NCBI RefSeq assembly: GCF_000315625.1
Contig: NW_005434647.1
Location: 52,103 to 116,102 of the forward strand
Direction: 5' to 3'
From: Guillardia theta CCMP2712
Lineage: Eukaryota; Protista; Cryptophyta
Length of the DNA stretch: 64,000 nt
Every line of letters begins with the position of its first letter. Position 1 is the stretch's first letter. The notes under the pieces were generated by a model. The model was not told where the DNA came from. It saw only the letters and a program-made list of their open reading frames with translations, and did no database searches. Below are positions 43,423-47,533 of the stretch, in pieces. The position numbers and the translations under genes were made by a program.

Positions 43423-46400
43423 CTAGTTCCTCGACCCTCCCGTCCCTGTGGTTCGCTGCCTCTTGCTCCCCCGATCGTCGCATCCTCCCACCTCATCCTC
43501 AAAACGAACCACCGACGTCGTCGTAGCTTCCGCTACGTTCATCGTGTGCACACCAGTGGAGGCGAGTCCGATACCATATGATGCAGGGAGCGAAGGGACA
43601 CATGGGCTACCCGACCTGTCCTGAGGCAGGGGAGCGTTGGGCACAATCCCCAGCATGCCCCCTCCCAGCGCTTGTATGCCTGGCATGTTGGCGACACTAG
43701 AGCCACCCACATCCTGCGCGTACACTTGACCCTCCATGTCTCCCCGCTCGAACCCGAACGTCAGGTCGACGTGGTCGAGGATTCCCATCCTCGAGTTCAT
43801 CCTCAGGATGCCTGGGGTGACGGTCAGCGAGCAACGGCACACGTTCCAACTACCATCAATGCGCGGAACAGCTTCAGGGTGCGCGAGGTAAGCCATAGAA
43901 GGTTGCTTTTGGTAGAGGTGCTTGAACTGCTGTGCCCTGTCTGAGGGGTTTGAGTACTCCCCGCCCTTGGATCGCTTCTGACTCCTGCGCATCAGCTAGT
44001 CAGCATTGGTCGTCTCGGCAGAGACCACAAGGTACTTGGGTCTCTTTTTGCTCTTGCTCGCTGCATCAGCACGCGCGTCTTGCGGACGTCGTTGGGGGGC
44101 CGAGGTCTGGCCAGCAACTTGCCCATGGGCTGACAAGTGAGGGCTCAGTTGCTGGTACTGCTGCATCGGCTGCCTGTGGTTTCCTGCCTGAAAACCGTAG
44201 GGCTGATTCTGGTAGGGCATGCCAGGCAGAGCCTGGAGAACAGGAGAGGTCTGAGGCAGGCTGGGATCTTGAACGTGCGGGGCGTAGCTCGGAACATGCT
44301 CGGCTCCCTCCGACTGCGAGGGCTCGTTGATGTCGAACGACTGCAAGCTGTTGGTGCTCCCGTTGGACTCCATTGAGGCTCTAGAAAGGTTGATCCTCTG
44401 CATCTCACCAGGGTTCTCAGACCCCAGCAGACTGTTGGTGCTGCCGTTGCTCCCGTTCGAGCCCGAGTACGAGCTCTGAGCTCTCCGCAACCTCGCCTGC
44501 CATCACGATAAACGCCGAGCAAACTGCCTTCACAGCAGCCGCACCTCCGCCATCGACTGAAGCCTTGCTTCCAGGATGGGAAAGCTTTTAATGACGGTGG
44601 CAACGTCCTCCCTGCTCAGCTCGAACAGCTCGCATGTGCACAAGGCTTGCACGTCTGCTGTTCTCTTGTGATCGCTTCTTGACACCAGAGCAACCTATGC
44701 GCAGCTCAGAAAGAGGACGACATGCAGCAGACCCACCTCTCCGAAGTAGTCTCCAGTCCCTAGACACGTGACTTCCTGACCATCAACCAAAACGGACAAG
44801 CACTTGGATCTCTGAATGCCGTGGGCAATATCCTCTCCAAGATGAACCTTCATCAAACATATTAGACGCACTGCAGGAATCCCGCAACGTATACCCCGCT
44901 TCCAATCGTCTGCTGCGGCGTAGATCCGACGAAATACATGCACTTTCCTTCGTCCCCCGATCTGATGACATACTCGTTTGCTTTGACAGTGACTCTCTTC
45001 AATCTTCGCGTGACTTCCGACAAGCAGCTGGGATCAACCTGCGTCGTAACCTCAGCACACCGATACAAAAACTTTGTGCAGCACCTGCTCGAACAACGGC
45101 AAGCGGCGGATAAGCAAGAAGGCCTTGTGCTGCGCGCCAAGGGATTTGTCTTCCTGGGAGCTTGCATTTACGATCCATTGATGTTCGAGACACTACACAG
45201 CAAAATCCAGTCAGCAGAAATGAAAAACTGAGGTGACGATGGGCAGGTCAACGGATTACTTGCTGAGCTGTCAAACGTTGTTTAGGGTCAACGACAAGCA
45301 TCCTCCTGACCAAGTCCTGATAACGCACATGAGTCGCGTGCGAATAGCAACAAAGAAGTGTGCCTTCGCTAAATCTGAAATATTGTCCCAGTAGGGAGAC
45401 GGGAAAGAATAGTCCCCTCTTCGAATCTATGAAACTCATGAATAAACCAGACGACCATCACTGATTCGACTAACCTGACGAAAAAGCGTGACAGTGTTCT
45501 CGCTGTAAAACGGAGGGAATCCGCAGAGCATGATGTAGAGGACCACTCCAATACTCCAGACATCAATCTGAGGCCCGTATCCATGCGGAGCTGTTAGACG
45601 AGGGTCGAGCACCTCCGGGGCGACATATCCTGGGCAGACTTTAGCTGAAACGTTTTGAGCGACACACGAGGAAACCTGGAGTCCCACACATTGTCCGCAT
45701 GGGTGAATCGGGTGATCCACACCTATCATATCGAGTTAAACGAGAGAGCCCCGGCTACCCGGGAGAAATCGGCAAATAGGAAGATCCCTTTACCTTGCGA
45801 GACCGAAATCTGCAACTTTGATGTGCTTGTATTCCGGCATACTCTCATCGTTTGACATGTACAACAAGTTTTCTGGCTTAAGATCCCTGAAAGAGTAAAT
45901 GAGTATGCCATGTAATAGAACTAAAAGATGAATGATGGAAGCAACAAGGCAGCATTGAATCAGACCTGTGTACAATGCCTTGAGCGTGCAAGTACGCAAC
46001 TGCTTGCAAGACATCTCGAGAAACCTGAACCAAAGTTAATACGGCTGGTGAGATGGTAAACCATCCTACCTCAGCAGCATCCTTCTCGGAATAATGACCA
46101 CGTGCAATTATTCTATCAAACAGTTCCCCTCCAGTTACGAGGTCTAGGACCAGACATATATATCCTTGTTCTTCAAAAACCTGACCGCAAGGATCAAATC
46201 GATGCCCAACACCTTGCAATATGAAAGTTTTGAACCTCATGAAGTCTTATACAGTTCCGGTGATTTATACGATGCATCGTTGCAATTTCTTTGCGCAACG
46301 CATCGGCATCAAACGCTACACTAAAATCAGCTGAAATCTCTCAATATCGATAAACAAACCTGGATTCGAACGATCAATCATCTTTATGGCAACTCGGACA

Positions 46401-47533
46401 CCAGTGTGTTTATGCTGAGCCTGCAAATCACCCACAATCAATAAGCTCCCGAAGCAAAATTAAGATTGAAGCAACCTCTTTTACAACTGCAAAGCTTCCC
46501 TTCCCCAATGTAGATCCGATATGATAAAAATCATGCACGCTGCGAGCATTCCTGATTCACAGAAAACATCAGGAACGACTCATATGGAAAGCTTCCATGA
46601 TGTCAACCAACGTAGATATCAAAATATCACCTTCCATGGTACACATGGTTCGGAATCGTAGCTTGAGGTGCAGGGGCTGACACATTCGAGTCCTCCTGTG
46701 GACGCATGCTGGGTTGGCAAGGTTGCACAGATTGAAATCCGTGCTGATTCTGTATCATTATATTCTGTGACACAGGCACCATTGGTGCTGTAAACCCTCC
46801 GTGGAATCCCATATTGTTTTGTATCATTCCTATGGACAAAAAAAAATCATCGAAATTGCACAGCAAGAGTCATTGTGAATGAGGATTGGCTTCTGGACAC
46901 AAGATAACATTGGGCATCCAAGGTGGTGCACTGAGATGTTATACAGTGTTTTGGAAATCATTTTCAAGGTTGAAACAATTGGAATCAAGACTGTGTGGAC
47001 CCAATCTGTCGAGTTGGACGACGCATACCTTGATTCTGGTTCGCAATGTAGCCAACCATTTGGCCCTGCATTCCACCACCCACCATCCCCATGTTGTAAT
47101 TTGAACCCCCTGGTGGTGGATCCGTGCTGCCACCAACCACCCCAAAGGCGCCCTGCAGCCAAGTCAAGTTCTCGTCCGCTGAGATATCACCCTCCACATA
47201 GAGCGAAGCATGCCCTCTCTTAAGAAGCAGCAAGTGGCTATCAGCAGGTTCACATCGATGAGTGAAGCATGTGTCTGTGGGATAGGACGGCCAAGGTCCT
47301 GCCGACTTCCATGCACGCACTGGCTTGACCATTGAGCAACACCTCACAGGCAGGACAGCTAAACAGTTTCAAAGGTGATAAAGCAACAAGGGACAAACAA
47401 AAGACTTAAACCGGAGCCCACAATCAAGTTTCTAACATGTTCTTCCACATATCAGCATGGACGAAAACACAAACGCGGGGCTAACAGCATCAGTGGTGCA
47501 GCGGACAGGCCATACCGCGGGGGGCGCCGCCAT
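43423..47533 (-). CDS. CaMK-group Ser/Thr kinase fused to a C-terminal cyclic-nucleotide-binding (CNB) domain; low-complexity termini
   Basis: Kinase ~46530-45180: [70 protein letters not shown] ~45130-44540: [34 protein letters not shown]...RTADVQA...LFELSRED. Gene ends approximate. Confidence 0.88.

Follow-up and report, generated by a model that had tools for sequence, protein, structure and literature searches.

To our knowledge, every characterised protein kinase that depends on cyclic nucleotides (cNMPs), namely PKA and PKG, belongs to the AGC group, and the sole non-AGC case that we know of is the ROCO protein GbpC. [quoted passage not shown] In the CDPKs of plants, apicomplexans and ciliates, a CAMK-type kinase is instead joined, through a junction/autoinhibitory helix, to a C-terminal second-messenger sensor made of four EF-hands for Ca2+. 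Here we describe a gene on the minus strand of a 64,000-nucleotide stretch of DNA from the cryptophyte Guillardia theta CCMP2712 (contig NW_005434647.1, positions 52,103 to 116,102; this whole stretch is called the window below), in which a CAMK kinase, as in CDPKs, is followed by a helix and a fused sensor, but in which this sensor is a single C-terminal CNB beta-roll, so that the messenger would be a cyclic nucleotide. As a whole, we consider with moderate confidence that the locus is best explained as an expressed gene for an 878-residue Ser/Thr kinase carrying a single HCN-like CNB domain, in which cNMP would relieve autoinhibition.

The initial annotation of this DNA knew of no characterised protein with such a CaMK-CNB layout, and none was found in the literature. 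A survey of CNB domains published in 2007 lists PKA, PKG, Epac, HCN/Na channels, protozoan HCN-type channels and PAS, PP2C and phospholipase fusions as eukaryotic classes; a CaMK-CNB fusion appears neither there (PMC2246266) nor in papers on Stentor, Ostreococcus and T. cruzi. Literature on cryptophytes or Guillardia that deals with CNB domains and kinases yielded nothing relevant. For Phytophthora infestans, Table 2 of the kinome paper places cNMP-binding domains in 'AGC, CAMK' kinases, of which the CAMK entry was not located, and six of the seven mentions of cNMP binding in its supplement concern AGC/PKG or PP2C-CNB-kinase proteins (PMC3019232).

One spliced transcript for kinase and CNB domain

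The gene model was built manually, by reading the three frames together with the splice sites, and comprises 20 exons on the minus strand (47533-43423), whose coding sequence of 2637 nt corresponds to 878 codons and one terminal stop. Its 19 introns measure 42-363 nt, 18 being of the GT-AG type and one of the GC-AG type; introns are very short in the eukaryotic DNA of this window. All the protein strings quoted in the initial annotation were found on this strand, and the span proposed there (44540-46530) does cover the kinase-CNB core, but the whole gene extends well beyond it into low-complexity ends (Table 1).

Four public runs provided transcript evidence over positions 43500-49400: the assemblies X1, X2 and X9, which come from three different studies and are recorded merely as probable RNA, yet are spliced, and the raw RNA reads of X16. 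In each assembly, one contig of 2.45-2.64 kb spans the kinase-CNB gene, and the 15 contig joints that were listed all coincide with introns deduced from the sequence, including the GC-AG one (4 further joints were unlisted). Since spliced contigs from three studies span the whole gene, the kinase-CNB fusion is real. Across positions 45250-45100, where the initial annotation had proposed reverse-transcription PCR to check that both domains share one mRNA, the contigs link the two, and the junction even falls within one exon (45192-45085) in which the kinase end and the CNB start sit together. The idea that the fusion is an artefact, arising from two neighbouring genes or from a mis-assembly, is refuted and keeps practically no probability: besides this shared exon and the single contigs that span both parts, at least five paralogs hold kinase and CNB domain in one frame, and about 50 transcriptome-derived relatives from cryptophytes keep them in the same order.

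The transcripts also settled several choices between splice sites. The GC-AG intron lies at 45363-45317, and a GT 12 nt beyond this donor would preserve the frame as well, yet the GC site is used by all three contigs; the GT donor at 45351, which would add four residues, was discarded for this reason, and the ortholog described below agrees. Similarly, a short version of the junction between exon 45038 and exon 44847, with a donor after MYF, was rejected because the transcripts show the long form, again in agreement with the ortholog. An early end of the protein at 'VRLL*' (44530) or at 43996 was dismissed as well, because both stops lie in introns that are removed in the transcripts.

While exons of the window gene were searched individually, two database proteins were used as proxies for whole-protein analyses: P0039, an ortholog of 606 residues from a Baffinella-like cryptophyte cluster, and P0001, the transcript-derived product (501 residues) of a G. 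theta paralog. Residues 131-566 of P0039 are matched in colinear order by the 14 core exons, each exon abutting the next, with 338/434 identical residues (78%), which validates the gene model independently. Altogether, we are almost certain of this description of the gene, of the fusion and of the family.

The first exon (47533-47516) was located through the loose 5' end of the contigs. Another in-frame ATG is found after a stop at 47659, 42 codons upstream of the chosen one, and would add 42 residues if transcribed; the true start is uncertain because transcript coverage is thin (one run) across 47534-47659. The raw reads of X16 (29 over the stretch) are too few for transcript starts, ends or expression level.

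Kinase domain, junction helix and CNB domain

An intact CaMKI-type catalytic domain had been announced in the initial annotation, and the searches bear this out. Every catalytic motif is present: the G-loop GKGSFAVV (residue 130), VAIK (149), HRDLKPEN (242), DFG (269), APE (293) and HQWI (385). In the exon-wise scan, Pfam Pkinase matched the kinase exons, exon 45629-45475 scoring 44 bits, and on P0039 it reached 256 bits over residues 138-403. When structures of the PDB were ranked against the P0039 kinase, CaMK1D (274 bits) and CaMK1 (257 bits) came first, followed by CaMKIV, CaMKII, DCLK and CDPK. The activation-loop residue Thr284 is taken to occupy the same place as the activation-loop Thr of CaMKI, namely the position of Thr177, the CaMKK phosphorylation site of that kinase. 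As the kinase is of the CAMK group and the single CNB domain is C-terminal, the protein differs from PKG, an AGC-type kinase with tandem N-terminal CNB domains.

The linker between the two domains does not vary in length and is highly conserved in sequence across 53 family rows, with LH..H.AFLLIRKLP.F in most members. With HMMER, it aligns with residues 276-289 of CaMKI and with the junction of TgCDPK1. The CaMKI alignment stops at residue 289, where the first helix of HCN-type CNB domains takes over, and no Ca2+/calmodulin-binding segment follows; because the alignment ends there and the chain continues as an HCN-type CNB helix, the gene product is not a canonical CaMKI. The first part of the CaMKI regulatory segment is thus similar, whereas the calmodulin-binding part is missing and a CNB helix starts about 17 residues after HxWI. 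The earlier claim that the CNB domain replaces the CaMKI regulatory segment was therefore right as to the place, since the CNB domain does begin where this segment would be, but it needs correction in that the first part of the segment appears to be kept.

An AlphaFold2 model of P0039 (residues 125-580), built from a 106-sequence family alignment, gave a mean predicted local distance difference test (pLDDT) score of 88 and a predicted template modelling score of 0.87. Model residues 8-309, which end inside the post-kinase helix, superpose on CaMKII (2bdw and 2vn9, autoinhibited), on CASK and on DAPK1/2 with their regulatory segments included, at Z scores of 36-37.5 and root-mean-square deviations of 1.7-2.2 A over 287-296 residues; for the kinase domain, the structural matches to CaMKII, CASK and DAPK have Z scores of 35-37.5. 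A shape search of the ESM Atlas returned CaMK and CDPK clusters only. In this model, the chain seems to keep the initial portion of the CaMK regulatory segment and to run from it without a break into the first CNB helix, so that the helix of the junction exon is predicted to be the autoinhibitory helix and the first CNB helix at once.

A helix at the position of the CaMK regulatory segment, which is moreover basic and hydrophobic as calmodulin targets are, would also suit a kinase that is still regulated by Ca2+/calmodulin, or that has two inputs, the helix binding calmodulin and the CNB domain acting as the second input. We find this very unlikely, considering that the CaMKI alignment breaks off before the calmodulin-binding part, that the helix is integral to the CNB fold, where it aligns with the first CNB helix of HCN4, and that it has no Trp anchor.

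For the CNB domain, the Pfam model cNMP_binding (PF00027) gave 18.3 bits on exon 45038-44895 and 19.3 bits on exon 44694-44545. Each exon stays below the cut-off of 27.5 bits because introns and an insertion split the domain, and the uninterrupted protein P0039 scores 48.6 bits, above this cut-off. In the P0039 model, the domain shows a beta-roll, a cassette helix and B and C helices at a pLDDT of about 90. Its closest solved relatives are the CNB domains of HCN4 and HCN2, with 63 bits in two stretches that span the whole domain; one regulatory fragment of an apicomplexan-type PKA scores like HCN, over the cassette half only, and the CNB domains of PKG reach at most 36 bits. The likeness to HCN and related channels thus extends over the full length of the domain, including the Glu and the Arg-Thr-Ala of the cassette; the differences are that the window protein has no channel and no C-linker, that its CNB domain comes after a kinase, and that it carries a 23-residue insertion and a cassette that is two residues longer.

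In the phosphate-binding cassette, Gly501-Glu502 and Arg513-Thr514-Ala515 align with HCN4, with two extra residues between them, and Glu502 and Arg513-Thr514-Ala515 are conserved in the orthologs P0039, P0052, P0038 and P0045. The cassettes of the window gene and of these four orthologs are two residues longer than those of the paralogs and of HCN. The same five proteins share the 23-residue insertion between two strands of the beta-roll, which is absent from other family members and is modelled as disordered (pLDDT below 50 at residues 350-368 of the P0039 model).

The initial annotation had read the Arg-Thr-Ala of the cassette as PKG-like and cGMP-favouring, which does not hold, since the aligned CNB domain of HCN4 carries it too. 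HCN channels prefer cAMP. Because HCN4 carries the motif and HCN channels prefer cAMP, Arg-Thr-Ala gives no ligand identity.

The CNB domain of the window protein likely binds a cyclic nucleotide. The alternative would be a CNB domain that is independent of ligand, or that takes another ligand, comparable to the cyclic-nucleotide-binding homology domains of KCNH channels, and that serves for docking, dimerisation or localisation, while the kinase is controlled by phosphorylation of its activation loop alone. The longer cassette and the disordered insertion in the subfamily of the window gene speak for this, as does a paralog (L009) without Arg-Thr-Ala, from which it follows that family members can retain the fold even if their cassette is not canonical; CNB folds with ligands of another kind have also been described (PMC2246266). 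Against it stand the conservation of Glu502 and of Arg513-Thr514-Ala515 in the window gene, in its four orthologs and in most of the family, and the one-for-one alignment of the cassette residues with the positions of HCN4 that contact cAMP, and we therefore regard it as unlikely.

Table 1. Features of the kinase-CNB gene, with positions in the window
Feature	Residues	Positions	Strand	Exons or basis
Coding region		43423..47533	(-)	ATG 47533-47531, stop 43425-43423; splice joints matched by contigs X1, X2 and X9
N-terminal low-complexity region, rich in G, P, Q, M and N	1-114	46552..47533	(-)	exons 47533-47516, 47152-47029 and 46829-46631
CaMKI-type kinase domain, 11 exons	123-388	45172..46526	(-)	Pfam Pkinase, motifs and structural match
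Thr284 in activation loop 'RTMCGTPGY'	284	45692..45694	(-)	sequence
Junction exon	382-417	45085..45192	(-)	one open exon: kinase end CLEHQWI, 10-residue spacer, helix
CNB domain (predicted to bind cyclic nucleotide)	about 399-552	44545..45141	(-)	end of exon 45192-45085 and exons 45038-44895, 44847-44737 and 44694-44545
23-residue insertion between two beta-roll strands	458-480	44803..44918	(-)	interrupted by intron 44894-44848
Phosphate-binding cassette, G501-E502...R513-T514-A515	501-515	44656..44742	(-)	split by intron 44736-44695; exons 44847-44737 and 44694-44545
C-terminal tail, rich in S, G, Q, A and P, three exons	326 residues	43423..44496	(-)	transcripts and gene model

Paralogs, cryptophyte relatives and analogous kinases

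A longer junction probe detected about 10 paralogous loci in the G. theta genome (87.1 Mb in 669 contigs), three of them clustered on contig C28. In five paralogs, one reading frame of 375-630 residues without a stop runs through the kinase and into the start of the CNB domain. A word-based search with one paralog frame then gave about 50 full-length relatives, in which kinase, junction and cassette come in the same order and with constant spacing; these originate from G. theta, Hanusia phi, Hemiselmis, Rhodomonas, Cryptomonas curvata, Baffinella and Teleaulax. The cassette motif FGE..L....R[TIV]A is strongly conserved across the family. When the CNB part of P0001 was used as a query, family members were found down to E = 1e-26, followed by an abrupt drop to CNB domains of K+ channels at 1e-10; at the sensitivity of this search, the family looks confined to cryptophytes, and by the same comparison its CNB domain looks channel-like. 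An exhaustive search of representatives with the cassette exon likewise returned close full-length relatives from within the family only (P0039 with 78% identity, P0052 with 64%), the rest being multi-CNB proteins.

Public names of members are automatic and include 'hypothetical protein GUITHDRAFT_...', 'calcium/calmodulin-dependent protein kinase I' and 'cGMP-dependent protein kinase' (UniRef), so that public annotation hides the CaMK-CNB family. Since the kinase is CAMK and the single CNB domain is C-terminal, the last of these names reflects domain content and not membership. The window gene is a divergent, long-tailed member of this uncharacterised cryptophyte-wide family, and its long ends (114 N-terminal and 326 C-terminal residues of low complexity) set its subfamily apart from the paralogs.

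Individual paralogs show further variation. The paralog L009:571-2460 (+) (G000:C24, ~62.9-64.8 kb) has the same junction, but its cassette has lost Arg-Thr-Ala ('GRQLSIDA') and it may not bind cNMP. In L006:652-2148 (+) (G000:C28, ~650.4-651.9 kb), the frame passes, directly behind the first CNB half, into a run of over 20 Met codons, probably an intron made of ATG repeats. The G. theta genome as a whole holds at least 139 CNB-domain matches, showing that cNMP signalling is extensive in this organism. Among these other loci, L002:418-3114 (-) and L003:118-1962 (+) are intronless frames of 898 and 614 residues with two and one CNB domains, respectively, and without a kinase; L003 lies on the contig of the window, about 20 kb before the window start.

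Other chains that combine CNB domains with a kinase outside PKA and PKG are Dictyostelium GbpC and the PP2C-CNB-kinase proteins of plants and oomycetes (PMC2246266, PMC3019232). GbpC differs from the window protein by its ROCO/TKL-type kinase and by the RasGEF and GRAM domains that separate this kinase from its CNB domains, and the PP2C-CNB-kinase type by CNB domains that are N-terminal to an often inactive kinase; neither has a CaMK core abutting a CNB domain. The order of kinase then CNB domain does recur in Ser/Thr kinases of Myxococcota/Deltaproteobacteria, with at least 237 proteins of about 770 residues (P0212, P0252-P0370), but these are bacterial Hanks-type kinases and not CAMK, and P0212, the member that was scanned, has two CNB matches after a long spacer. 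At first, P0212 resembled a remote eukaryotic relative sharing the junction, a reading that was rejected, as P0212 belongs to a bacterial (Myxococcota) family; its layout is therefore an analogous, independent invention rather than homologous evidence. We know of no characterised member of this bacterial type.

EF-hand families were found neither on any of the scanned exons nor on P0039 (Pfam). A metagenome protein of 562 residues (P0215) combines a kinase C-lobe, two CNB matches and an EF-hand pair; it is CDPK-like and may combine Ca2+ and cNMP inputs. Clusters of the ESM Atlas with Pkinase and cNMP_binding labelled 'Chlorophyta' and 'Ciliophora' were left aside, because their domain order was not given and they could simply be PKGs of the usual kind. 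An origin independent of PKA and PKG, which the initial annotation had suggested, fits these data: the kinase is CAMK and not AGC, and the CNB domain is HCN-like (63 bits, against at most 36 bits for PKG).

The two ends of the window protein were also examined. The N-terminal region has no counterpart in the paralogs of about 500 residues. In the C-terminal tail, a Pfam scan of exon 44496-44036 found no family; a basic cluster, KSKKRPKSQKRSK, lies at residues 700-712 (44055-43966) and is a possible nuclear-localisation signal. Further on, a motif at residues 738-750 is conserved, YLA.PEAVPR.DG being common to the ortholog fragment P0124. Positions 43812-43853 form a 42-nt in-frame intron that would encode '...DGSWNVCRC...' if retained, and P0124 ends at this same point with '...DGMSWLHCCGC-stop', a Cys-rich end that resembles a lipidation tail. 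The G. theta transcripts splice out 43812-43853 and then run on for another 128 codons or so, which may reflect a remodelling of the C-terminus or an alternative isoform.

Outside the gene, a neighbouring gene accounts for distinct transcript contigs at 48819-49400 and for RNA reads there whose first mate is on the plus strand.

A candidate cNMP-gated kinase on a CaMK chassis

According to the mechanism that we propose, the post-kinase helix would lie, when no ligand is present, on the kinase lobe at the position of the CaMK autoinhibitory segment, and this same helix would open the CNB domain. Binding of cAMP or cGMP in the cassette (Glu502, Arg513 and Thr514) would rearrange the CNB helices and pull the helix off, thereby releasing the kinase, and full activity may also need phosphorylation of Thr284 in the activation loop. 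The logic would be that of CDPKs, in which the sensor follows the junction helix, except that a cyclic nucleotide would be read here instead of Ca2+. Considering the ortholog model and the analogy with CDPKs, we give an even chance to the proposal that cNMP binding activates the kinase by releasing the helix.

The sign of such regulation is not fixed by sequence, and the long tail with its basic cluster hints that localisation matters. A bound cyclic nucleotide might accordingly inhibit the kinase, or alter its localisation or the binding of partners, without relieving autoinhibition. The predicted position of the linker helix, which is that of the autoinhibitory segments of CaMKII, CASK and DAPK, points the other way, and the fixed length and sequence of the linker across the family suit a release mechanism better, which makes inhibition or relocalisation quite improbable.

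Activation by release of the helix thus remains the reading that we prefer, and the points that weigh against it are the following. The longer cassette and the disordered insertion could weaken or change ligand binding, and nucleotide specificity cannot be read from sequence. Some paralogs, such as L009, have a degenerate cassette, and therefore not every member of the family need bind cNMP. The autoinhibited pose comes from a predicted model of the ortholog P0039 and not of the window protein, and the amphipathic basic helix could still bind calmodulin.

In its broadest form, our proposal is that cryptophytes have a class of cNMP-gated kinases of their own, built on a CaMK chassis, in which one helix would both autoinhibit the kinase and form the first helix of a sensor of the ion-channel type, and of which the long-tailed window member with its basic cluster would be directed to the nucleus or to a scaffold; we put this forward tentatively, rating it a little short of even.

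If the family is cNMP-gated, it would represent a second, independent solution to the control of a protein kinase by cyclic nucleotides, using the principle of CaMKs and CDPKs, in which an autoinhibitory helix is coupled to a fused sensor, but with a CNB domain of the channel type where the Ca2+ sensor would be. It would also show the ease with which one kinase chassis can exchange its second-messenger inputs. Such a compact, single-chain, cNMP-controlled kinase could also be of use in synthetic biology. In the cell, a pulse of cAMP or cGMP, for example after light-driven or cyclase-linked signalling, would be turned into CaMK-type phosphorylation without PKA or PKG, and the family would then read out directly the very large repertoire of cNMP signalling in cryptophytes.

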